This document shows, piece by piece, positions 6,432 to 38,100 of a DNA stretch of 64,000 bases. The stretch's first letter is position 1. Every line of letters starts with the position of its first letter. Under the pieces are notes generated by a model. It did not search any database. It worked only from the letters and a program-made list of their open reading frames with translations, and had not been told where the DNA came from. Both the position numbers and the translations under genes were made by a program. This DNA is from Histomonas meleagridis 2922-C6/04-290x (lineage: Eukaryota > Protista > Parabasalia). Location: the NCBI GenBank assembly GCA_020184695.1, contig JAANOX010000205.1, positions 372,001-436,000 of the forward strand, in the 5' to 3' direction.

Positions 6432-8633
6432 TTAAAGTTCAATTTTGCAAAAACGCGTCAATTCCTCGTTTGGCATTGCAGACTGAAATATGCTTTTACA
6501 CGATGCCATCATTTGTGAAGTTGGGTAAGAGAACATTCCACCGAACACTTGTGCGCAAGCGAAGTCATTAATGAATACGTAGTTCGACAACATTCCGTAA
6601 GGATTCGAGTACAAGAAGCACGTGATGAATATTGGCGTATATTCATCAGCGCCCAATTCCATTGACGGCGGACAATTTGTTGAGAAGTATTTGTACACCA
6701 TATCGAACGCGTTTTTTAGGAGCGAAATCTTTCGAATCGGGTTAATTTCCATGAACGCTAAAATGATATTTTCCCAAATTTCGAATTCGTCTCGAAGTTT
6801 TTCGACGAGTTCTCTAAGAATAACTTTCTTTGGCTTTTTGTTTACGTCATAAGGTTCAGTAGGTAAAGGGAATTGTTCTTGTACGAACGGCGTTGCCATT
6901 GTTGATATTATACTTGAAAGTTGATTATCATATTCACTTAATTCGGAATGAGTTTCTTGGAAATATTGGAAGTTAAATGAAGAAGTTAATATACTATAAC
7001 ATATTTCAGGATATGTTTTTGTGATTAAATATTTCGGTAATTCATTCTTACCTTTGATTATAATTTGTTGATAATCATCTAAAAATAACTTCGGATCATT
7101 CATATATTGTATAGTACGTTGTTCATTATTTATGTTATTATTCGACTTAAATAATTCGGTGTAAATTAAATAATGTAATAATACATTAAAGACACGAATT
7201 CGTGTGTCGGATGTAAGTTGTCCAATAGATAATATCGATGTAGTAATGGATGTATATGCACTTAACGCGCGGATCTCTTTCTTACGCTCTAAGACAACTT
7301 TACTTAATGTTCGGATTAAGTTCGCTTCATTATCAAAGCCACATAACATGTTTAACATGTTGGCTTCTTCTTGTCGTGATAATAATGTCTCCGGTGGCCC
7401 CATTTGTACTAAATATGCATTAACAAATCCTTCTGTTGTTAACCCTAATGGAGTCTCGGAGAAATATGGAATTGAATCAGACTTCTTTAAGAGATGTCGT
7501 AATGATACTTCTGGTTTAAAGTTACTTTTAACCATTGTAACTTCTTTTAAGTTATGAATACTATCTTCGACAATTAAGTTTTTAGGCTTTGTTGCATATG
7601 GAATATATTGAAGATTATCTATTGTTCGAAATGATTTAGATAAAAAGGTATATTCAATGGATGAAATAACATGTGAACTAAATAATGCAGGTGCATTATT
7701 ACGATCTTTTGTTGAGATAAACTTAAAATGTGGACTTTTACTTTGTATTGTAATATCAACTAAATCATTAATAATACTATGTGGTTCACCAGGTGTTAAA
7801 ATATCACGAATCGCTTGAATAAGATGTGTTGAAGGTGATTGGAAAAAATCAACAAGACAAGAAATTTGAATTAATGATACATTACCTTTCGGTGGTGATG
7901 TAGCTTCAGCAAAGAAACCATTAAAAAGTACATCAGCAGGCTTAATGTCATGACGACGGATTTTTAAGAGTTTAATTATATATGGTGGTATTATGTTAGT
8001 ATTGGATTTCCATCGTTGCTTAATACTAGCACCAATAGATGTTAAATTATAGTTTTGTGTGCCTCTCTGTGGTGTCATGACAGAAAGTGCTGGAATAAAA
8101 ACTTTGCTGATAAACCTTAGAAAAAGTGGAGAATAAAATGCCATTCGCGAAAAACTGTAATATTTTTGTGGGTCTTCAATGGTTTTAATTGTTTTAATAA
8201 AAGAAGCATTCCCAAATTTGGTTGTAAAGAAATAAAAATAAGATGGAAGTGGACCAAATGTAAAAAAGTCGATTTGTGCTTGATCAGTACATTTTTCATA
8301 ATTTTTGACAAGTTTCTCGAGTGCTGGACAATCGTATGAATAAGGAACGATTTTTTTATCCCCTAAAAATGATTGATAGAATAGTGGAAATTTTTTTTCA
8401 TTAGAATTATATAGGCTATGAAAGAGATAGACAACTACATAATGATGTTTTTGACTGTTGAGTTTTTTGAGAAATTTCTTTTCAAGAAAATGATACTCTT
8501 TTGTTCTATAACTTATTTCAACTTCATTAATCCCAAGTTCGTTACGAAGTGCGTTTTGAGCCTCTCGAAATTTGTCTATAAGTTCTTTGGATATGTCACC
8601 GCCTGATAGAGCAAAGCTCGAAACAACTTTCAT
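6432..8633 (-). CDS. VPS9-domain protein (Rab5-family GEF)
   Basis: 733-aa ORF. The C-terminal INPIRKISLLKNAF...LGADEYTPIFITCFLYSNP..MLSNYVFINDF matches the VPS9 GAD signature. Confidence 0.8.
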   Translation of the reverse strand: MKVVSSFALSGGDISKELIDKFREAQNALRNELGINEVEISYRTKEYHFLEKKFLKKLNSQKHHYVVVYLFHSLYNSNEKKFPLFYQSFLGDKKIVPYSYDCPALEKLVKNYEKCTDQAQIDFFTFGPLPSYFYFFTTKFGNASFIKTIKTIEDPQKYYSFSRMAFYSPLFLRFISKVFIPALSVMTPQRGTQNYNLTSIGASIKQRWKSNTNIIPPYIIKLLKIRRHDIKPADVLFNGFFAEATSPPKGNVSLIQISCLVDFFQSPSTHLIQAIRDILTPGEPHSIINDLVDITIQSKSPHFKFISTKDRNNAPALFSSHVISSIEYTFLSKSFRTIDNLQYIPYATKPKNLIVEDSIHNLKEVTMVKSNFKPEVSLRHLLKKSDSIPYFSETPLGLTTEGFVNAYLVQMGPPETLLSRQEEANMLNMLCGFDNEANLIRTLSKVVLERKKEIRALSAYTSITTSILSIGQLTSDTRIRVFNVLLHYLIYTELFKSNNNINNEQRTIQYMNDPKLFLDDYQQIIIKGKNELPKYLITKTYPEICYSILTSSFNFQYFQETHSELSEYDNQLSSIISTMATPFVQEQFPLPTEPYDVNKKPKKVILRELVEKLRDEFEIWENIILAFMEINPIRKISLLKNAFDMVYKYFSTNCPPSMELGADEYTPIFITCFLYSNPYGMLSNYVFINDFACAQVFGGMFSYPTSQMMASCKSIFQSAMPNEELTRFCKIEL

Positions 8634-22881: not shown

Positions 22882-24219
22882 ATGTTTTTCGCCTTTTTTG
22901 CCTTAAATTGTTTTGTTCAAAGCAAAATCGAAGTAGTAAAAGGTTCACACACAAAATCAGTCCCTATTGCAATTTCTAAGGAAGCTATATTCGATGAATC
23001 CTTTGTTCAATACCGTCAACCAAATAAGTTTAATTTTAAAATTTTAAAACGTATAAACAAAAGTTCGAAGGTGGCAAAAATAAGTCCAGTTAAACTTCCT
23101 ATGCAGATAATCTATGAATTCAAAACAGAGGATTCTTTGGATGATTTAAGAGTCAAAAGCAAAAACTCGCTTAAATCAATTTCTTTGAAGCCCAAGCTCA
23201 AAAGAATTTCAGCCAAAAATTCCAACGAAAACCTACGTGCACCATCCATCAAACCTTCCATAGTAAGCCGTAGTATCATTAAAACGGGAAAAGTTATCAT
23301 ACCAATATGGTCAGCTGAAGGTTTAAGAAACGAAGACGACACGACCCCACAGCGACCAGCTTCAAGCAGAAGCAATTTCAAGCAAGACGGAGACCCATTA
23401 TCAATAAGTGTAGTTCAAGCTGAGACAGGTTCTGCAGCCAAAGGGTCATTTTCTTTTTTAAGGGGCAATAACAGTCAGATCCGTTTTCATCCAATTTTTA
23501 GGCGCACGCCCAAAGAAGAAATTAATGATATCTCTGAATCATTACGTAATTCAAAAACGAACATTCAACACATTCACAAAAAAATTATGAAAATATACTC
23601 AAAAGTCGAATCCTCAGCTCCTGTAAAAGGAAGTGTTAAGCCTACATCTGCCTTGCCTGGATTAAAAAATGAAGACAATGAAATTATTTTTAGAATATCA
23701 AATAGAACCTTTAAAATAAAATTAAATAGAATAGCTACAACTGCAATTAAAACGGAGAGAACGTCGAAGGTTATAGATTCTTTTACTGATTTAAGAAACG
23801 AAGACAATGAAAATATTTTTAGAATGTCAAATAGAACCCTTAAAAAAACAATTAAACCTGTAGGTAAAGTTGCAATTATAACAATACGATTTCCAATAAT
23901 TACAGATTCTTTTCATGATTTAAGAAACGAAGACAAAGAAAATATTTTTAGAATATCAAATAGAATCTTTAAAAAACCTGTAAAAAGAAAAGTTAAAAGT
24001 GTAATTAAAACAATGCGATCGCCAATAATTACAGATTCTTTTCATGGTTTAAGAAACGAAGACGAAAATATTTTTGGAATATCAAATAGAATCTTTAAAA
24101 AAACATATAAACCTGTAAATAGAAAATTTAAAAGTGTAATTAAAACAATGCGATCGCCAATAATTACAGATTCTTTTCCTGGTTTAAGAAATGAAGAAAA
24201 AGAAAACTCAAAAATCTGA
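22882..24219 (+). CDS. Hypothetical basic protein with possible signal peptide and C-terminal ~43-aa repeats
   Basis: 445-aa ORF with a hydrophobic MFFAFFALNCF start and repeated LRNEDxENIFRISNR units. Confidence 0.65.
   Translation: MFFAFFALNCFVQSKIEVVKGSHTKSVPIAISKEAIFDESFVQYRQPNKFNFKILKRINKSSKVAKISPVKLPMQIIYEFKTEDSLDDLRVKSKNSLKSISLKPKLKRISAKNSNENLRAPSIKPSIVSRSIIKTGKVIIPIWSAEGLRNEDDTTPQRPASSRSNFKQDGDPLSISVVQAETGSAAKGSFSFLRGNNSQIRFHPIFRRTPKEEINDISESLRNSKTNIQHIHKKIMKIYSKVESSAPVKGSVKPTSALPGLKNEDNEIIFRISNRTFKIKLNRIATTAIKTERTSKVIDSFTDLRNEDNENIFRMSNRTLKKTIKPVGKVAIITIRFPIITDSFHDLRNEDKENIFRISNRIFKKPVKRKVKSVIKTMRSPIITDSFHGLRNEDENIFGISNRIFKKTYKPVNRKFKSVIKTMRSPIITDSFPGLRNEEKENSKI
23662..24219 (+). 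repeat. Coding tandem repeat, 129-nt period (last interval 135 nt), about 4.3 copies
   Basis: The L(R/K)NE start codons fall at 23662, 23791, 23920, 24049 and 24184. Confidence 0.9.
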
Positions 24220-26370: not shown

Positions 26371-28799
26371 TGGGATTGAGAAGAACCCTTTGGGTTCAAC
26401 GTAATGCACTACGTGCTGCATACAGCACCATTATTTTTATTATGTTTTTTTCCAGAAATTCCTGATTTCGTTCGTGATATCTTCAAAAAGTGAATCTTTC
26501 ACAATTAAGTATATAAACCTTTCAATTGAGTATAATAAACCATTAAAATTTTTCATAAAAAGTGCCATCAAGCTATTTAATTTTTCCAAAATTAGTTATC
26601 CTGTGTCTGATCACTGTTTTTATTAATTCGCTTTTGAGTAACCTAACAAAGAAAATTCTTTTAGTTACATTGATAAATTTATATATAGAATCATGATTTC
26701 TTGCTTTTATTCTTCGTACACCAAAAGATGCATATTTCATTTTTAACGAAAAACGCAATATTTAAATCAAGTATAAAAAATCAAGTATAGACCCTTATTT
26801 TCTTCTTTATTTTCAAATATGATTATGATGATGATTTGATTGTTATGATATCAGTGTTTTATTGAGATTCTTCTGCTGAGTTCTGAGAAAAAGTTGTTAG
26901 AACATGTATATTTTCTTCGATCGACGATTATTTTTCATCCAAAAAGTTAATAACCGTATAATATTTGAATGATAAATCGCCGTTTAAAACCGTCGTGCAA
27001 AATACTACTTTTTCTCGAAATTCAACAGAAGGAATCTTTAAATATTTCAAATTAATTTAATTTAGTATATATGAATGCTTATATTAAATTCTTGAGAGAT
27101 AAAAAAAAGCGAGTTTCTAGAGTCTTGATGACCTTTTGACATGTAAATTTATATAATAAATATACTTTTCCTCGAGATCAATGACATTCATCTTAGTAAA
27201 AGGTACTCTCCAAGCAAAAGGGAAAATTTGAATACCTTCCTCTCAAAAAGTGGAAATGCCTTTCAATTATGCGTGATTTTTTGAATAGCATTGAAAAATT
27301 TTCATTCAAAATATTTTTGTGAGAAAATATTCCTTCTCAAATTCGATTTCTATGTTCTACATTTTTTGACATAAAAATTTCTGAAAATTTATAAATTGCC
27401 ATTGTATTTTTTTTTTTTTTTTAAATTATTCGATATTTTCAATTTTAATATGACAAATATGCACTGACACGCAACATTCTCAGATATAATATATTTATCG
27501 AACTCAATATTTATAATGATAATATATATTAAATTCGTTTCCGAAATTCGGTCATAGGTATACTGGGAAGATATAAGAACTAGCCATTAAAAATACATAA
27601 TATATGCACATAATTGAGGATATTAATTAATATAAATATGAAATAATATTCATGATAAGTCAAGATAAATTTTTTTTTTTTTTTTTAAGTGACAAATATC
27701 ACTTTTGTATGGTTTATTTTCGTCGGTGCGCCGATGGTAAACGATATGACAAATAGATGCAAGATAAATGAGCAATAAATAAACATATTTCTTGATCAAT
27801 TCATTGCAAATAAAGTAAAAATAACAAAAAAATATCATTGATCACTAAATGAACTAACAAAATATGAGGAGGGGGGGTGGGGGTAAAAAGAACGACCCTT
27901 TTATCTCGACTTCTATTCAATAAAAAAAATTATTTTTTTAAATTATATCATATTTAAATATTCATTATTAAATCTAAATATGTGAGCATTATGTTCATCA
28001 TGTCCAAATGCAATTGTTTTTCAATCATTAAATTTTTCTTTATAGACATTTAGAAATATTGCCAAATTGCATAATTATTGGTAGAGGAATGACATTAAAT
28101 TCGATGAAGAAGTTATGTTTATATTAGATATATTAAATATACTATTAGTTAAAAACCAATTTGTTACACTATCTATTGCATAATTCGAAGAATTGAGAAT
28201 TTTCACCTTATTTAGAATATTTATGTTCATTTGATTAATATTTGAAACTAATAATTTATCGTATTTCATAAAGAATATTGAAATATTATCAAGTTTTTTA
28301 AGCACAAAATATAATATCTTATATACTCAGTACCAAACAAATAAAGATCATGAAACTGGATTCTGCAATATATTTATTAATATATTACCACATATAAGTA
28401 AAAAAATGCAAACGAATTAGATAAATCGAGAATAATAATAAGAGTAATTAAAGATTACATTAATATTTTTATTTATATTTTTAATATCATAATTTAAATT
28501 CCATTGAAAACAAAAAATCGGAAGATATAATCAAGAATAAAAAAAATGTATATAAATATCTACAACAAAGAACAAATATAAAATATTATATAACGAGTTA
28601 AATATTACTAAAATACATCAGATAATGAGATAACTCATTATTATAATAATTAATACAATGAACAACACATGTGTTGATAATTTAATTTATTATTGTTGAT
28701 GATGCGAAATCATTTATTGTAAGTCATAATAAATCAAAAAAAAAAACAACAATTTTATGAAAAAAATTATTAAAAAAAACCAATTTATCACTGAAATGA

Positions 28800-30540
28800 T
28801 TCATTAATAAATTATGATTCATTATTGCATTAATGGAATAATCTTCTATTATAATAATTCCAAGAACAGTGAAACTATGGCAATAACAATTCCTGTAATT
28901 GCACTTGGATGAAGCTTTGTACCATTACTATGGCTCAATGGGCATACATCGCTTATTTTGTTACCCTTGGTAACATTGATCTCTGCAAAAGTGCTTTTTA
29001 GAATATTCATTTGTTACATAAATAGTTGGACTATCAAATGTTGTATTATAACACGATGGTTCATTCTTACCATAGAAGCAAACAATTTCAAGACTCATGC
29101 ATGAACTAAAAAGCATAGTTATCTATCACATTAATGTTCTCTGGAATGATAACTTTCTTAATGCTATTGCAATTGATAAATGCGCCTAATCCAATCGTTC
29201 TTACTGAGCTGGGAATATCAATACTAGAAATCAAAGAACAACCTTCAAATGCATATTCTTGGATTGCTAATATGGTTTTTTTGGAATTACAACATCACCT
29301 GATTTTTTCCAGAAGGGCAAAAATATTAATTTAGTAATATTTTTTTGTTATATACAATTCCGTCATTGTTATAATTGGAGTAATATACATTATTTAGTGA
29401 GATGGTTACAGATACTAAATTTGGACAATTTTGAAATGCAAATAGACCAATTGAAACCACTGAGTCTGGAATATTGACATTGTGGAACAAACATCCATAA
29501 AACTGGAAGTCTTGTAATACTGTGATTGAATTGGGAATACTTAAATTTGTCAACAAAGAACAATTAATGAACGAAAAAGACACCAATTGATTTTTACAGA
29601 ATTGGGGATATTTATATTTGTAATAAGAAAACAATCCTCAAATGCATAATCTTCAATTAATTGAACAGAACTAGGAATATTAACAATACCTTCTACTGCT
29701 GATGGACATAATATTACTTTTTGATATGTTTTTTTATCATAAACAATTCCATCATTATTATAATTCGAATAGATTTCATTATTTTCAGAGATTTTAATTG
29801 CCTTTAATTTTGTGCATGCATCAAATGCAGATTCATTAATTAGGGAAACTGAAGAAGAAATTTCAATTTGCTCTAAATTTAAACACCTATAAAACGCAAA
29901 TTCTTGAATTTTTTCAACAGAATCTGGAATTATAACATTTGTTATCTGCCTGCAATCAGAAAAAAAGAGGAATATCCTATTGATTTTACAGAATTGGGGA
30001 TATTTATATTTGTAATAAGAAAACAATCCTCAAATGCATAATCTTCAATTAATTGAACAGAACTAGGAATATTGACAATACCTTCTACTGCTGATGGACA
30101 TAATATTACTTTTGATATGTTTTTATCATAAACAATTCCATCATTATTATAATTCGAATAGATTTCATTATTTTCAGAGATTTTAATTGCCTTTAATTTT
30201 GTGCATGCATCAAATGCAGATTCATTAATTAAGGAAATTGATATAGGAATAATAAGCTGGTCCATAGAACAACCATAAAATGCATAATCTTTAATCGTTG
30301 TAACAGATTCACCGATTACTACATTTGTTAATTTGCTCTGATTATAAAAAAAGCATGTCTATCAATCACAAAGACATTGCGCCCAATTGGCAGTATTGAA
30401 AAATGACCAATGGTTTCAATATCATCTCGGGTAATAGTTGAAACATTAAAGACTTTAAGAGTATCATTTTTCGAGAATAAAGTTACAGCATGTGAAAAAT
30501 AGGAAGAAGGTAAAACATGTATAAAAAAAATAAATGCCAT
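28800..30540 (-). pseudogene. BspA-like leucine-rich-repeat (TpLRR/LRR_5) surface protein with C-terminal TM segment, broken by many frameshifts
   Basis: IPSSVQLIEDYAFEDC, IPDSVEKIQEFAFYRC and IPSSVRTIGLGAFINC repeats in successive frames. TM-like AITGIVIAIVS near 28870-28910. ATG at 30540. Confidence 0.85.
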
Positions 30541-30570
30541 GTTTGGCAAATTTAAAATTCAATTGTTCAA

Positions 30571-30968
30571 ATGTTTTTTTCTTGATCCCTATTATCATTG
30601 TTGCCAGACAATCAACAGAAAATAATGAGGAAAACAGTGCTAAGCCAGGACTTTTAGTTAATGTTAAAGGAGATCTTGATTTCAACGAATTAATAGATCA
30701 AATCAGCAAAATAGTAGGTTTCTTGCTAACAGCAAAAAATGAAATTCCAACAAATGGAGGTGGTAGATTTATTACAGGTGTTGATTCCGGTAATGTTTAT
30801 GCATTTTATTACCATCCGTCAAAGAGACACAGAGTTTCATGTAGACCAGGACATGGCCAAAGAATTCAACCAAAAGATCCAGTATGGTTTGAGGCAAATG
30901 AATGGGCCTATGTTATTCTTAAATCAGCCTGGTATGGAGGTAATCGATGCTGGTATGATGATGAATAA
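30571..30968 (+). CDS. Putative secreted protein with C-terminal lactococcin 972-like (bacteriocin) domain
   Basis: The C-terminal 71 aa read NGGGRFITGVDSGNVYAFYYHPSKRHRVSC...WFEANEWAYV...GGNRCWYDDE. The frame is open from ATG 30534. One extra T in the T7 run after ATG 30571 would give the signal-like start MFFFLIPIIIVA. Confidence 0.7.
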
Positions 30969-31369
30969 ATCTAGATTAAGTGTAAGAACTTCAATCGATT
31001 TATTTAATTTTTTTAATAATTAAATAATTTTTTAAATATATTTTAAAAATTTTAATATTATTTTATATTATTTAATGTTTTTATAATGTTTTATGTTATT
31101 ACCATATAATAATTTAGCTATTTAAAAATATATTATTCGATTTTTGATAAAAAAATGCCATTTTTTTGCTAAAAAAATGCCATTATAATCCAAAATTTCA
31201 TCAAAAATATTTGCATGTAGGAATACAACAGATTATTTTTAAAATGTATATTGTTGATTGAAAACATGTGTTTTGATCAGAATTATTCTAATATTGAATA
31301 AAAAATATTATTTTTGATATATTAATTATGGAATTGTATGAGAAAATAATATAATGATAGCCTAACATA

Positions 31370-31910
31370 AATTTATGTTATGTACATGCATAAAGCTTCA
31401 TCAAATTTGTGTATTTTCACTTGTTTATTCATGCTTTTTTTCATATTATCAAATGTTTTTATCATGTTCATTCATGTTGTTCTATCTTATCTTGTGCTTA
31501 TTCATGTTTTTTCTCATTATAAAACTTTTTTCATATTATCTCATTTGTATTAATAATTTTTTATGTTTGTTCACATAATTTCATATTTATTCGTGTTATA
31601 TAATGTTTATAAATTAATTTTGAATGTTATCTCATGATTTTCTATGTTATCTCATGTTATATCATATTTATTAATGTTTTTTCATATTATCTCATGATTT
31701 AATATGTTGATTCATGTTTATTCATGTTTTTTTCATTTTATCTGATATTTATTTATGATTTTTTATGTTATCTCATGTTTATTCATGGATATTCATGATT
31801 TTTCTTGTCATAAAATGTTTATTTATTAATTTTAATCTTATCTCATGTTTGGTTTGTTGTTCGTTGTTTTTTTTCAATGTATTATCTCCATGTTATTCAT
31901 AATACATGTC
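31370..31910. repeat. Degenerate short-period repeat of TCATGTT / TTATCTCATG / TATTCATG motifs
   Basis: Many copies at roughly 10-20-nt spacing. Similar patches occur at ~36560-36840 and ~37480-37600. Confidence 0.6.
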
Positions 31911-33981
31911 ATAATAACATATAGTGAAATTTTTTATATTTTTCTATGAATTGTGTGACATTTTACACTTAATAATTCCATGAAAATCCATTTTGTTTAT
32001 CAATATCAATAGATTTCAAGTTATAACATTCGTCAAATGAAGTTCCATCAATGAAAATTACAGAATTAGATACTTATACTGTTGTTAATGCACTTTGTTC
32101 ATTAAAAGAAAGTTCTTCTATTTCTTAAACAGTATCCCCTATAATTACTTATGTAAAATAATGATTAATAAATAGCAATTAATATATATAATAATTTATC
32201 ATTTTTTTATGTTTCATTATGTTCTCTTCATTTGATTTTGGTTTATTATATATTGTATATAATAGAAAAAAGCAAATGAACAGGAAAACATATATATTTC
32301 ATAAGAATATCAAATAACATATGAAAACACATTTGAACACCATAAATAACATAAGAATATGAATATTTACATTCGTAAACATATTGACTATGTAATTTAC
32401 AATATATTATGAGGCTTGTTTTTTTATTGTAAGCTTTTGCTGAATAATAACCCAATTTTTGGGCAAGAAAAAAATAAATTATATATAAATAAAACTATAA
32501 TATGCTGATGCATTAAATGTCAATATACATATTCTACATAATAAGATAATATTTTAAAACTTTTTTTTTTTTAATCAGAAATTAGGATATTTAGATCACT
32601 TTATATTTACCCTCTAGTCATATATCAATAATATATATTTCGATTTTAAGAATATATAAATATCTTTTTTTATCATTATATAATTGAATTTATATAAAAC
32701 ACCTTAAAGTTAATGTATCGATTTTTTTGTATAAGAAATTCTCTTAAATGATTATATTTTTTTAGATAAATTAAGACTATTTACTCAAACCAGTAAAATA
32801 ACTGCAGTTATAATGTGAAATAAAAGGGTATTTTCATCAAGTAGAGTTGCAAACATAAATTGTTATATAAAATTAACATTGAGTTACGGATGAGAACTTT
32901 ATTAGCTGACAACATAATTTAATAACTTTCATACTTTAAATATAACATTAGACTTTCATTTGTTATAATATAAATAAAAAACTTCTTTCTAACTTTCATC
33001 AATATTTCTCAAAATTCATTTGAATGTTGTACCATTTCATTTCTTCTAACAACAGTTAATTTATATGGGATCAGCTTTCGAACATATTCCATATAGTACA
33101 AAGCATACTTGAAAACTTTTTAAATATATTTTTATGTATTGCCTAATATTTAAATAATATGTTTTTTTTACTTTCATATGAATATTTTGGAAGGATCTAT
33201 GTAAATGACTCAATTAAGTTACTGTCGTCCATTTCATTAGTATATCGGAATAAGTATGATAAATTCACTTTTTTTGCATTTTTTACAAATCATTTTTTTA
33301 AATTTCTTATGCATATATAATTTTCTCTAACTAGATTATTTAATACTACATACATGATTTTATATTCTAAATAAATGAGGATGAGATATTTAATTATAAA
33401 ATTGACATAAATTCAACCATGATTTTTTTTTATTTTCTCAATGAAATTTTGGTCATCACCAAAATTTCAAACAAATTTTTTTCATTATCAAATAAAAGTT
33501 TAAAAACTTTAATTCTAGTTTATTAATACACACATCTTATATAATAAAATAATATTATTCAAAATATTATTTATTCATTTGATGTAGAGATATGTGAGTC
33601 AATTAAAATTGACCCTCATATATTTTTTGATATATATTAAAATCCATTCATTCTATATTATGAAATTATATTATTAATTTTTTTATGAGCTAAATGTCTA
33701 GATATCAATGATCATAATTTATTCGATTACAAATATATTTAAACAAATTATTTTTATAAAATTTAATTGGATTTAAATGAAATATATTATATTTGATTTA
33801 TTGAGCTATTTATGAAATATTATATGAATTAATTGATTTTTGCTGATTATAATATTTGATTATTATCGACTTAAACTAATAAATTAATTTTTCTTTTTTT
33901 ATGTATACGCTTTTATTTATTATTCATATTAATAATAATTCAATATTGTATGCATTATGCGTTTAATATTTATTTGTTATT

Positions 33982-34549
33982 ATGAATTACAATCAGCCTC
34001 AACAATTATCTTTCCCGTTTATCGATAATACTCTCTCTTATTTTTTTCTTTTTTACGAATGAAGACGCAGCTATTCAATTCGCATTACAGAATGGAGTTA
34101 TTTATAATCAAATGATGTGTGAAGAATGTAATTTCGATATGCAGATCTACAGAGATTCTTCAAAAGGATTTGGATACAAATGGATATGCACAAGATGCCA
34201 CAAATCAAAAACAAAAATAATTTCTGATTGCTGGAAAGCGTATGACTTTCTTGATGATGACAATGATTACGAGCATGAAACTGTTAATCATTCATGTAAT
34301 TTTGTTGATCCTGAAACTAAAGCGCACACTCAAATGATAGAAAGACTTTGGAGGGAACTAAAAAAAATTAATAAAAGATATGAAGGAATCCCAGAAAATA
34401 AAGTCAATGAACATATATCAGAGTTCATGTGGAGATGGAATGTTATTCACAATAAGGATCAAATGTTTAGGGCCGCCGTTCAATTAATTGCAGACACAAA
34501 GTTTACAAAAGTAATTGATTGCGATGAAGAAGAAGAAAAGTTGGAATAA
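33982..34549 (+). mobile_element. Merlin/ISXO2-like (IS1595-related) transposase, internally deleted
   Basis: CxxC...CxxC zinc finger joined directly to IISDCWKAY, then HETVNHS..FVDPET.AHTQMIERLW. ATG 33982 joins the 34112 frame if one base is removed from a poly-T run. Confidence 0.85.
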
Positions 34550-34619
34550 GTAAAAATTCATATCTTCGATTGTTATGATCATTTTTTATTTCTAGAAAAT
34601 TGAGGATAGAAATATAAAT

Positions 34620-35180
34620 GATATTTTATTATGTTATTTAAATATCGATTTGTGAAGATTTATGTTACAAATTTTCGAAAATTTTCGAAAATTTAATTTT
34701 TTTGAAAAAAATATGTATATATTATCTTTATTTGATGACATATTTTATTATATTATTTAAATATTGATTTGTTTAAATTTTTTTGTTACAAATTTCGAAA
34801 TTTTGAAAATTTAATTTTTTAAACATCTGTATATATTATCTTTATTTGATAACATATCTTGTTATATTGTTTAGATTTTGTTTTGTTTAAATTTTTTTTT
34901 ACAAATTTTCGAAAATTTTGAAAATTTAATTTTTTTAAAAAAATCTGTATATATTATCTTTATTTGATAACATATCTTGTTATATTGTTTTAGATTTTTG
35001 TTTTTGTTTAAATTTTTTTGTTACAAATTTTCGAAAATTTTGAAAATTTAATTTTTTTAAAAAAATCTGTATATATTATCTTTATTTGATAACATATCTT
35101 GTTATATTGTTTAGATTTTTGTTTTTGTTTAAAATTTTTTGTTACAAATTTCGAAATTTTGAAAATTTAATTTTCGAAAA
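34620..35180 (+). repeat. Tandem repeat of ~115-122 nt, about 4.6 copies, downstream of the Merlin ORF
   Basis: TGTATATATTATCTTTATTTGAT recurs near 34714, 34828, 34946 and 35068. Confidence 0.9.
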
Positions 35181-38100
35181 AGATCGTCATTAATCAATCC
35201 TATATCGTGGTAAACCTTAATGTATTATATACACTTTAGTCCTATTAATTTTTTACATTAATTTGATGTCAAAAAAATCATATCAATTTTTAAAAATCAA
35301 ATAAATTCATTAATATAGCTCATTAATAAACTTGACATATGTTAAAAACTTCGATAAAATATTATTATATACATAAAAAATCGGATTTTTTAGGAATAAT
35401 TAAATTTATAAATTTTTCTGATTTCAGATTTCAATCACATTTCTCATGTTTAGTAATGTATACATATTTAATCACTCGAATTTTGTCCAACCAAACATAT
35501 TGCAATCTTGAAAAAAATAATAATTTTTCGGTAAAATGATGTTCATTCAATTATTGAATGATAATTCAATATTTATACAGAAAATTCTGCGTAAAAAGCA
35601 GTTAATTCCAAACATTTATTCAAAAAGTGAACATTTTTTTTGAAGAATTAATTATTACACACATTCATTTATGAGCGATAATATTATTTTATCTGGTAAA
35701 TTTTTCATTTTTGTATGAAAAAAATAGTGAAATAATCTATTCTATTTTTAAAAAATGTTAGAATATTTTTTGAAATATAAATCTAATGAAATATATAATT
35801 TTTAATGACAAAAATTGATATAATTTTAATTTGATAATAATCTTTTTAAAATCTTAACAAAAAAAAGGGGATTCATCTTATTCAGAGTCTTATATGTACA
35901 TGAATGTATATCTTATAATATTTCTAAAGTTACCAAGAAAATAAGTGTATAAAGTTATTGTCATAATGCTAATTGATATTTTATGGGAAATATGAATTTT
36001 TCGGTCATGTTTTGAGATGATCACAATTAGTTCATTTTTTTAATCATAGTTATAATTAATAATCATTAATAAACAGTATATTAATCTTGAAATAGTTCAA
36101 CATGAAAACATTTTTATTTTAGATCTTAAAAGTCTTCTTTGTAATTATAAATCACTTATATATATATATCCATTGAAATTTAACATTATTAAAGATTTTT
36201 ATAGGTGATTTCACGAACCTTGATCCAGAAAATAATTGTAATTTACAATTTTCATAATTATTTTATTTCAAATTCATTAAGTACAATTACTTTTATTACA
36301 TTTCGAGTTACTACTATTTCTTATGCATAATATAAAGAATTTTTTTTTAAGTTAGGTATCATAATAATTCATATAATTATATTAAATTTATACATTTTGT
36401 TCATTGATAGATCAAGATAACTTAGAATATTTGAAAAAATTTCATTATTTAAATCATAAGAGAGAGACTAAATTAAGGTAGAGAAGTCATAATTTATTAT
36501 AATAAACAAATTAATATAATATTCATATTTAAAAATCATATATACTCACATTTATTAATTTAATTCATGCTATGTTATATTTGTTAATGGACATGTATAT
36601 TAAGTGTTTTTCAATGTTATCCTATGTTAACTTTTTTTCCCCCCCCCCCCCCCAGTTCTTTATGTTATCTCAACTTTATTCATTTTTATTCTATATTTGA
36701 TGATGCTATTTCATGCTTATCAAAAAATTAATATATTCCATTCTTTTTTTATCTTGTTAAATTAAGCTTATTTATGCTTATTCATTTTAATTATGTGTTT
36801 TCTCCTTGCATGTGGTATGAGTGTTATATGTGTTTATGTGCCGGATGATATATATTAAAGAAAATAGCTAGGAGATTTGCATAATACTTATTATATGATA
36901 TTTATATTTAAATAATCTTGGAATAATATATTATTTCTCAAGGAAAATTTTAGTATTACCAAAATTGTTTGTAAAAACTAGTCTTTTACGATTATGGAAT
37001 CGTAAATGGAGCTTTTATAGATATTCATTAACATGTTAATATTATTATAAATGATTAAAGGAATAAAATAAGCTAATAAAATTATAATTTTATATACAAA
37101 TGTCATTAATAAATCTTGTTTTTATGAACACAGCCAAATAATAAATGTTGAAATACCTAATTCTCTTTATTACAATAGAATAACTTATTTTATAGAATAT
37201 TATTACATGAAATTATAATACCAAAATCAGCGATGTCAATTTCTCCAAAATATTTTATCTCATATTGTATTATGTTCATATATGTTAAAACCATGCGATT
37301 TTTCGTGTTGTATTTCATTCGAATAATAGTAAGGAGGGATTTTAATTATTCTATTTATTCACAATAAAGTAAGGACACTTAGTTTGAATAAACTTTATAC
37401 AGTATTGAATCGAAAATTACTTTAAATGAATTCAAATAATATTGTTATTTCATTTGATCTATTATATCTTGTAGCTTATTCACTCATGATTCTTCATGTT
37501 TACTTATGTTAATTCAAATTCATTTGTGTTTGTATATATACCTACTCATGTTCATTAATGAATGCTATAGTTAATTCATGTTTATTTATTATTCTTTATG
37601 TTGTTTTTGAATAAAAATCTTGAGAATTGATTTTTAAAATGAATAAATCTCAATATTAACTGAATATAAATCAAAATTAATGAAACTTTTAATATATCAT
37701 ATAATTTTAATAAATGTGATAAAGATATTTTTCAACTATTTAATTTTAAGTGAAAATGATTATCTATAATAAAAAAAATTCGAATATTTTAATATTTAAC
37801 AAAAAGCATTAATTATTATATATGTTTTTTGGTTTACAGATCAAAATCTATTTATATATATAAAAGTCGTATACTCAAGTAATCCGAATCTGAGCAAATA
37901 ATTTTTATTTTAAAATTATTTTATATTATAAGTGTATATGCTTGAAAAAGTAATTACAAATTTTCTGAAGGGACATCTCCAAGAGTCGATGTAATAAACC
38001 GGAATGTTTTTCATATGAACGGTCGATATTTCTTCACTTTTTATATAGTTTACACCCGACTGGCAAAATATTCAACGATTAAAATGTATTCAAAAAGTCG

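Follow-up and report, generated by a model that had tools for sequence, protein, structure and literature searches.

A lactococcin 972-family gene carried by a Merlin/IS1595-type DNA transposon in the genome of Histomonas meleagridis

What is a bacteriocin-like reading frame doing in the genome of a protist? The stretch of Histomonas meleagridis DNA analysed here (64,000 nucleotides; hereafter, the window) contains a short open reading frame (ORF) whose C-terminal part recalls lactococcin 972 (Lcn972), and the original prediction had taken it for a laterally acquired prepro-bacteriocin sitting among typical parabasalid genes. The locus thus raises the questions of whether such a domain is really encoded there, how it is related to its bacterial counterparts and in what kind of genomic surroundings it resides. 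The reading best matched by the data, to which we assign a probability of about 0.8, is that the gene is a Histomonas member of the AMP-Lcn972 family, of bacterial ancestry and with a secreted antibacterial role ascribed to it by homology, which has been amplified as cargo of a Merlin/IS1595-type transposon. The features discussed below are listed in Table 1.

Table 1. Features of the Lcn972-like gene and of the transposon that carries it (window coordinates).
Feature	Position	Strand	Basis or remark
Merlin/IS1595-type DNA transposon, window copy	27202..37847		Ends of homology, inverted repeats
Left terminal inverted repeat	27202..27401	+	Starts 5'-GGTACTCTCCAA
BspA-type LRR gene, second passenger, several ORF fragments	28849..30549	-	Divergent from the Lcn972 gene
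ORF of the Lcn972-like precursor	30534..30968	+	144 aa, stop included; identical to P0004
ATG used in six other copies	30571..30573	+	Out of frame in the window
Presumed signal peptide, hydrophobic core VFFLIPIIIVA	30573..30605	+	Inspection by eye
T7 homopolymer	30574..30580	+	T5 in L001-L005 and L007; deleted in L006
Conserved helix before the domain, DLDFNELIDQISKIVGFLL	30672..30728	+	phmmer, family HMM, AlphaFold
Lactococcin_972 beta-sandwich domain, HPSKRH with two invariant His	30753..30965	+	Pfam, profile, AlphaFold, Foldseek
IS1595/Merlin transposase remnant	33982..34549	+	Match to the intact L017 gene
Internal tandem repeats, ~114-122 nt	34644..35180		Within the transposon

The Pfam family Lactococcin_972 (PF09683) matches residues 75-135 of the 144-aa ORF (nt 30756-30938), the gathering score of 22 being exceeded by the full ORF (23.0 bits) and by the domain when scored separately (25.6 bits). 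The NCBIfam model TIGR01653, which describes the bacterial leader together with the domain, gives 14.1 bits, under its cut-off of 32.1, and a single-protein phmmer search of the PDB yields no match. Judged on this one sequence alone, the PF09683 match would be borderline. A phmmer search over 1.84 billion cluster representatives finds 27 proteins at E <= 0.001; relatives were cut into 35 units for alignment, profile building and a PF09683 scan, and the Pfam family is matched by 34 of these (best E 9.9e-16). The family profile, when run against the PDB, aligns over the whole mature peptide of lactococcin 972 (2lgn, residues 1-64 of 66, E 5.6e-7) and also recovers 9hkj, a "Lactococcin 972 family bacteriocin" (4.3e-6). 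Within the H-P-S-K-R-H motif, which aligns to HHGSKTH of 2lgn, H81 and H86 are shared by every one of the 35 units, and the window protein retains all nearly invariant positions of the family. A word-index protein search returned the gene itself only, and an alignment query added metagenome proteins only.

The fold leads to the same assignment. An AlphaFold2 model built with the family alignment has a mean pLDDT of 81, reaching 90-97 over the domain, where six strands are predicted. In a Foldseek comparison with 350,542 PDB chains, 9hkj (Formosin D) ranks first and 2lgn second, the latter with a target-normalised TM of 0.79, an rmsd of 2.4 A and a probability of 1.00 at an identity of only ~17%; the next ranks are occupied by unrelated cupins with rmsd above 12 A. 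Lcn972, Formosin D and the window protein thus have in common a beta-sandwich with the core G-x-W/F...Y-x-H-x-(S/T)-K-x-H...W-A, to which the window protein adds a presumed eukaryotic signal peptide, a helix and a strand. Since profile, fold and the invariant His motif agree, the domain assignment is secure, and the ORF is a genuine homologue of the Lcn972 family. The domain had been predicted at this place, with a Pfam match and an AlphaFold model compared by Foldseek proposed as checks, and all of this was borne out. Unlike bacterial Lcn972, the gene is accompanied by no ABC-transporter or immunity gene among the eight neighbouring ORFs in a Pfam scan.

Could the match nevertheless be a product of bacterial contamination or a chance resemblance? 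The single-sequence Pfam score, only 1-3.6 bits over the cut-off, and the empty phmmer search of the PDB are what might be cited for this, but both the family profile and the fold match, eukaryotic genes lie on the same contig, and the gene with its flanks is found in three assemblies and one Logan contig; this explanation is refuted. In particular, genes for a CCT/TCP-1 chaperonin, an XPD-type helicase, symplekin and IQUB, ankyrin and BspA-type LRR proteins share the window with the ORF, and the order of TCP-1, the gene and symplekin is repeated in an independent assembly (L015). The GC content of the coding sequence (CDS) is 35% amid surroundings of 19-25%, which is within the span of 19-39% covered by 2-kb windows. 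The original argument against contamination is upheld by these neighbours, by the independent assembly and by the GC range. Its wording that the gene sits among typical parabasalid genes has to be replaced, because the gene lies within a multi-copy Merlin-type DNA transposon (see below). The 90% cluster contains records named Histomonas meleagridis (KAH0793220.1, KAH0800299.1/KAH0800302.1, XP_067772930.1/933.1), annotated as "hypothetical" or "uncharacterized" only. Elsewhere in the window, tandem repeats of ~129 nt occupy positions 23643-24197 of an ORF (22882-24219) that has no Pfam match.

The part of the protein that precedes the domain has the look of a precursor. A hydrophobic 11-residue core, taken as that of a signal peptide, is seen by eye whichever start is used (Table 1 for the window; FFLIPIIIVA after Met in the copies with a T5 run), and the N-termini of the relatives are likewise short and signal-like (MFFALFLF..., MFLFLISL..., MFVLALLG...). 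Between the hydrophobic segment and the domain, a spacer of ~50 acidic or polar residues had been predicted. A polar, acidic stretch is indeed present, but the C-terminal half of the proposed spacer is a conserved predicted helix of the eukaryotic relatives: phmmer alignments to these start at query residues 39-47, the family HMM holds the helix segment as its positions 1-22, ahead of the Lcn972 core, and AlphaFold predicts a helix at residues 37-48. The segment, with the consensus D-(L/V)-N-x-L-L-D-Q-I in the alignment of units, occurs in most eukaryotic units and is missing from the match to the bacterial-type protein P0028. Because the helix is conserved across most eukaryotic relatives, a part of the presumed propeptide is a conserved family element. 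As to the two cysteines between which a disulfide had been proposed as a possibility, Cys90 aligns with a Cys conserved in the bacterial-type clade, and Cys126 is found, in this alignment, only in the window protein.

The relatives recovered by phmmer include proteins from T. foetus (XP_068363938.1, 7.8e-12) and T. vaginalis (XP_001325452.1, 8.5e-6), one record of the latter being named "bacteriocin (lactococcin 972) family". The best bacterial-type match, P0028, which has a bacterial-type leader followed by PF09683, is found at 6.3e-4. In the tree, the six bacterial-type rows are united in a clade (support 100/100), and the window row falls into the other half, where the T. foetus and T. vaginalis rows are placed too; its sister is P0006 (support 98/89), with a branch of 1.16 for the window protein versus 0.07 for P0006. 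The contig of P0006 has 42% GC, so that it comes from another organism. The relatives examined occupy ordinary eukaryotic contexts: they lie next to genes for BBS1, CAP and cyclases, and in one case next to an ORF that weakly resembles Sec5 (E 2.4e-4, under the Pfam cut-off), and no transposase was found beside those examined for it (T. foetus, P0006 and P0010).

This family has been described by Hart et al. (Mol Biol Evol 2025; PMC12612818), who found "AMP-Lcn972" genes, acquired by lateral transfer, in metamonads including Trichomonas; they give homologues from T. foetus, H. meleagridis, Hexamita, Monocercomonoides and Streblomastix and read the family as the result of a deep lateral transfer from Gram-positive bacteria. 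The published proteins and the window protein have in common a C-terminal Lac972 domain, an N-terminal extension, two invariant His (a motif already pointed out in PMC12612818) and a bacterial origin; a signal peptide is reported for some of the published members. The window protein significantly matches the T. foetus and T. vaginalis members treated in PMC12612818, is nearer to the eukaryotic than to the bacterial members and shares the N-terminal extension with the former, which places it in the AMP-Lcn972 clade; it differs from the published members in being long-branched, transposon-borne and multi-copy. The BLAST table of that study gives the top match per species, the Histomonas entry being KAH0788655.1 / XP_067770210.1 (PMC12612818), and KAH0793220.1 and KAH0800299.1/302.1 are absent from its text and supplements. 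As the table names different Histomonas accessions, the window gene is a further paralogue and no new kind of gene. Since its nearest relatives are eukaryotic, it is a divergent, long-branch paralogue that belongs to a eukaryotic clade of greater age and not a newly acquired gene. The notion of a laterally acquired prepro-bacteriocin is thus largely right but not new: the layout and the bacterial ancestry fit AMP-Lcn972, while the clade is older and eukaryotic and the family had already been published.

Some of the relatives have features of their own. The metagenome proteins P0005 (701 aa), P0008, P0013 and P0015 carry from two to five tandem helix-plus-Lcn972 units each, and may be polyprotein-style precursors or multivalent proteins of uncultured protists. 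Ahead of the Lcn972 unit, ~60 residues (SLF-x-C-x-CFI...) from the N-terminal region of P0014 from T. foetus (residues 38-95) align with residues 19-74 of P0008 at E 7e-8, and the N-terminal regions of P0005 and P0016 resemble those of P0014 and P0008 by eye; the extra N-terminal regions of P0014, P0005, P0008 and P0016 (122-165 aa) match no Pfam family. P0025, which groups with P0018, is an Lcn972 homologue from an MMETSP transcriptome labelled Ammonia sp. (Foraminifera), so that either the family extends beyond Metamonada or the transcriptome contains another organism. Finally, a metagenome contig (L010, positions 6491-7540) bears a signal-less 103-aa relative, P0030, together with BspA-type LRR genes, which suggests that short leaderless forms of this kind are protist genes too.

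As to function, the sole activity reported for eukaryotic members is that the domain impairs growth when expressed in E. coli. One T. gallinae gene is up 2.6 log2-fold in co-culture with E. coli (PMC12612818). A real secreted protein with the Lcn972 fold might have a target other than lipid II, whether another bacterial ligand or one of the host; the strong divergence of the sequence, the added helix and strand, and the multi-unit polyprotein relatives, which suggest other uses, would agree with this. The core motif and the fold have been kept, however, and the homologue from T. gallinae is induced by bacteria in co-culture, so that a change of target appears improbable, and the antibacterial role by homology is preferred.

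The genomic setting of the gene is less ordinary than that of its relatives. Homology between the window and every non-allelic copy starts at 27197-27202 and stops at 37847, and the complete copies of the element measure 11.0-11.4 kb (~11.3 kb) and are 98.1-99.65% identical to one another. They reside at four loci at least, which differ in the outer genes of their 10-kb flanks: TCP-1/symplekin (the window and L015), Rpb1 (L014 and L017), L016 and L013. An interpretation of the copies as haplotigs or assembly duplicates was rejected for these four or more loci, given that the outer flanks differ and the homology ends exactly at inverted repeats. The element ends with GGTACTCTCCAAGC... on the left and the reverse complement on the right (65 of 70 positions identical); in L015, the inverted repeats are 200 nt long and 90% identical. 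Both ends begin with GGTACTCTCCAA..., that is, with the 5'-GG of Merlin elements. Of the four insertions, those at the Rpb1 locus (TTCTTTTT) and in L016 (GAAATGAA) are flanked by perfect 8-bp target duplications, and no matching duplication was found at L013 or L015.

An intact transposase of 322 aa is encoded in L017 (13343-14311). PF12762 (DDE_Tnp_IS1595; cut-off 27) recognises it with 61.5 bits at 1.2e-16, and NF033547, the model for IS1595 transposases (cut-off 75), with 91.5 bits. The atlas clusters closest to it are Merlin-type transposases of eukaryotes, which serves as a lead only. In L015, the transposase gene is in three frames, split at A-runs. The window copy is more damaged: compared with L015, ~400 nt are gone from the transposase at ~34210, corresponding to residues ~78-214 and including the region of the first catalytic Asp, and 305 nt are gone at 37847, namely 274 nt of the element with the whole right repeat and 31 nt of the flank. 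The Merlin superfamily is defined by 5'-GG ends, duplications of 8-9 bp and this type of transposase, and a survey of 2021 found it within Metamonada in Preaxostyla only and not in Parabasalia (PMC8101967). The Histomonas element agrees with Merlin/IS1595 in its DDE_Tnp_IS1595 transposase with an N-terminal Cys-rich segment, its inverted 5'-GG ends and its internal tandem repeats, with 8-bp duplications at two of the four insertions, while it is peculiar in its size of ~11.3 kb, most of which is passenger and AT-rich DNA, and in having host-type genes aboard. The Lcn972 gene is the cargo of a Merlin/IS1595-type transposon present at four or more loci.

The BspA-type gene, which is the second passenger, and the Lcn972 gene are arranged head-to-head, the two starts being ~50 nt apart in L015. 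Within this BspA-like gene, the window shows a tandem duplication of 389-392 nt (29322-30250), whose segments 29592-29721 and 29984-30113 are 99% identical. Just downstream of the Lcn972 gene, still within the transposon, there is an AT-rich repeat with a 10-nt period (TTATCTCATG / TTTATTCATG; 31457-31837).

A transposon of this type offers another way to explain the gene, namely a recent independent transfer from bacteria by an IS1595-family insertion sequence carrying a bacteriocin gene. IS1595 is also bacterial, the transposase passes the bacterial NCBIfam model, and Cys90, the first in the domain, has its counterpart in the Cys conserved in the bacterial-type clade. Nevertheless, the closest relatives of the protein are eukaryotic and have the extra helix in common with it, P0006 and other relatives have ordinary eukaryotic neighbours and no transposase beside them, the BspA gene that travels along is of the parabasalid type, and the clusters nearest to the transposase are, as a lead, eukaryotic Merlins. 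A recent transfer is therefore very improbable, and capture by the transposon of a paralogue already resident in the eukaryotic lineage is the reading that we follow.

Is the captured ORF still a usable gene? In the window, it is open from the ATG at 30534. The original prediction had the protein start at the ATG at 30571, which does not hold for the window, where the T7 run that follows places this ATG out of frame, with a stop after four codons; only in the T5 copies is it in frame, to give a 131-aa protein starting MFFLIPIIIVA (MFFLIPIIIVARQ). These six T5 copies (L001-L005 and L007) come from GCA_020186115.1, GCA_020184695.1 and one Logan contig. Two of them, L005 and L007, have one extra nucleotide at 30630 and are frameshifted, and L006 has lost 87 nt including the start. 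In four further sequences, namely three chromosomal copies and the Logan contig, the frame runs without a break from its own ATG. The Rpb1-locus insertion was seen in two states in two 2021 strains (L014 versus L017): in GCA_020184695.1, the Lcn972 ORF is intact, and in GCA_020186115.1, the start of the Lcn972 ORF is lost with the 87 nt, and only there is the transposase ORF intact.

The T7 run of the window may reflect either an error of assembly or a difference between strains. A comparison of the copies counts 28-42 homopolymer insertion events in the window versus 12-29 in other assemblies; in the region 27500-34000, set against L001-L007, extra homopolymer bases are more frequent in the window's assembly than in the 2021 assemblies of H. 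meleagridis, which combine ONT with Illumina reads. Owing to these extra bases, several short ORFs have shifted starts, and gene models of the window's assembly need caution.

Variation among the copies bears on the same question. Of ~9,940 ungapped columns in an alignment of six copies, 310 are variable, and the CDS contains one variable column where ~12 would be expected from the element-wide rate; three other 400-nt bins contain zero or one. The low variation of the CDS was rejected as proof of selection for the reason that several non-coding bins of 400 nt are equally invariant; it is weakly suggestive of constraint.

These data have to be weighed against the view of an inert or decaying passenger, multiplied passively by the transposon and without further use for the cell. 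The long terminal branch could mean relaxed constraint; L005, L006 and L007 are frameshifted or have lost the start, the start of the window copy is shifted, and the co-passenger BspA gene is fragmented. Besides, none of the RNA runs listed holds the stretch, which is held by DNA runs of the same species. On the other hand, the ORF is open in the window and uninterrupted in the four other sequences, the nearly invariant family positions have all been kept, and the homopolymer differences may represent noise of the ONT assembly; the deficit of variable CDS columns points the same way, if weakly, some non-coding bins being invariant as well. On balance, an inert passenger is considered unlikely, and a retained AMP-Lcn972 gene is the reading that we favour.

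According to this favoured reading, a gene that descends from bacterial lactococcin 972 and has become part of a eukaryotic genome would encode a precursor composed of a short N-terminal signal peptide, ~20 acidic or polar residues, a family-specific helix and the C-terminal Lcn972 beta-sandwich of ~70 aa. By homology, the product would enter the secretory pathway, and the bacterial prototype together with the work of Hart et al. suggests that it might bind lipid II and serve antibacterial use. The paralogue would have been captured, together with the BspA-like gene, by a cut-and-paste element of the Merlin/IS1595 type, ~11.3 kb in length, whose transposition would have produced the near-identical copies at four or more loci. 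The window copy itself is truncated and would be immobile, its passenger ORF remaining open. A bolder version, in which the Merlin transposon is still mobile and amplifies in Histomonas a captured, functional antibacterial peptide gene of bacterial origin, seems to us doubtful.

In the caecum, Histomonas depends on bacteria and feeds on them. An antibacterial peptide would help such a bacterivorous parasite to kill or control them, and a secreted bacteriocin of the lipid II type would form part of its handling of bacteria. The gene family as such is confirmatory and not surprising, since the antibacterial idea has already been published for trichomonads. What is new is, firstly, the second, divergent Histomonas paralogue, overlooked by standard BLAST tables; secondly, a Merlin-type element in Parabasalia, where the 2021 survey had none; and thirdly, a eukaryotic DNA transposon that carries and multiplies the gene, which provides one route for the spread of a transferred gene within a protist genome and possibly between protist genomes. 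If the transposon were indeed still mobile, dosage of the gene or strain-to-strain variation in antibacterial capacity would be expected to follow, and the element would represent a ready vehicle for moving laterally acquired weapons between the genomes of protists.
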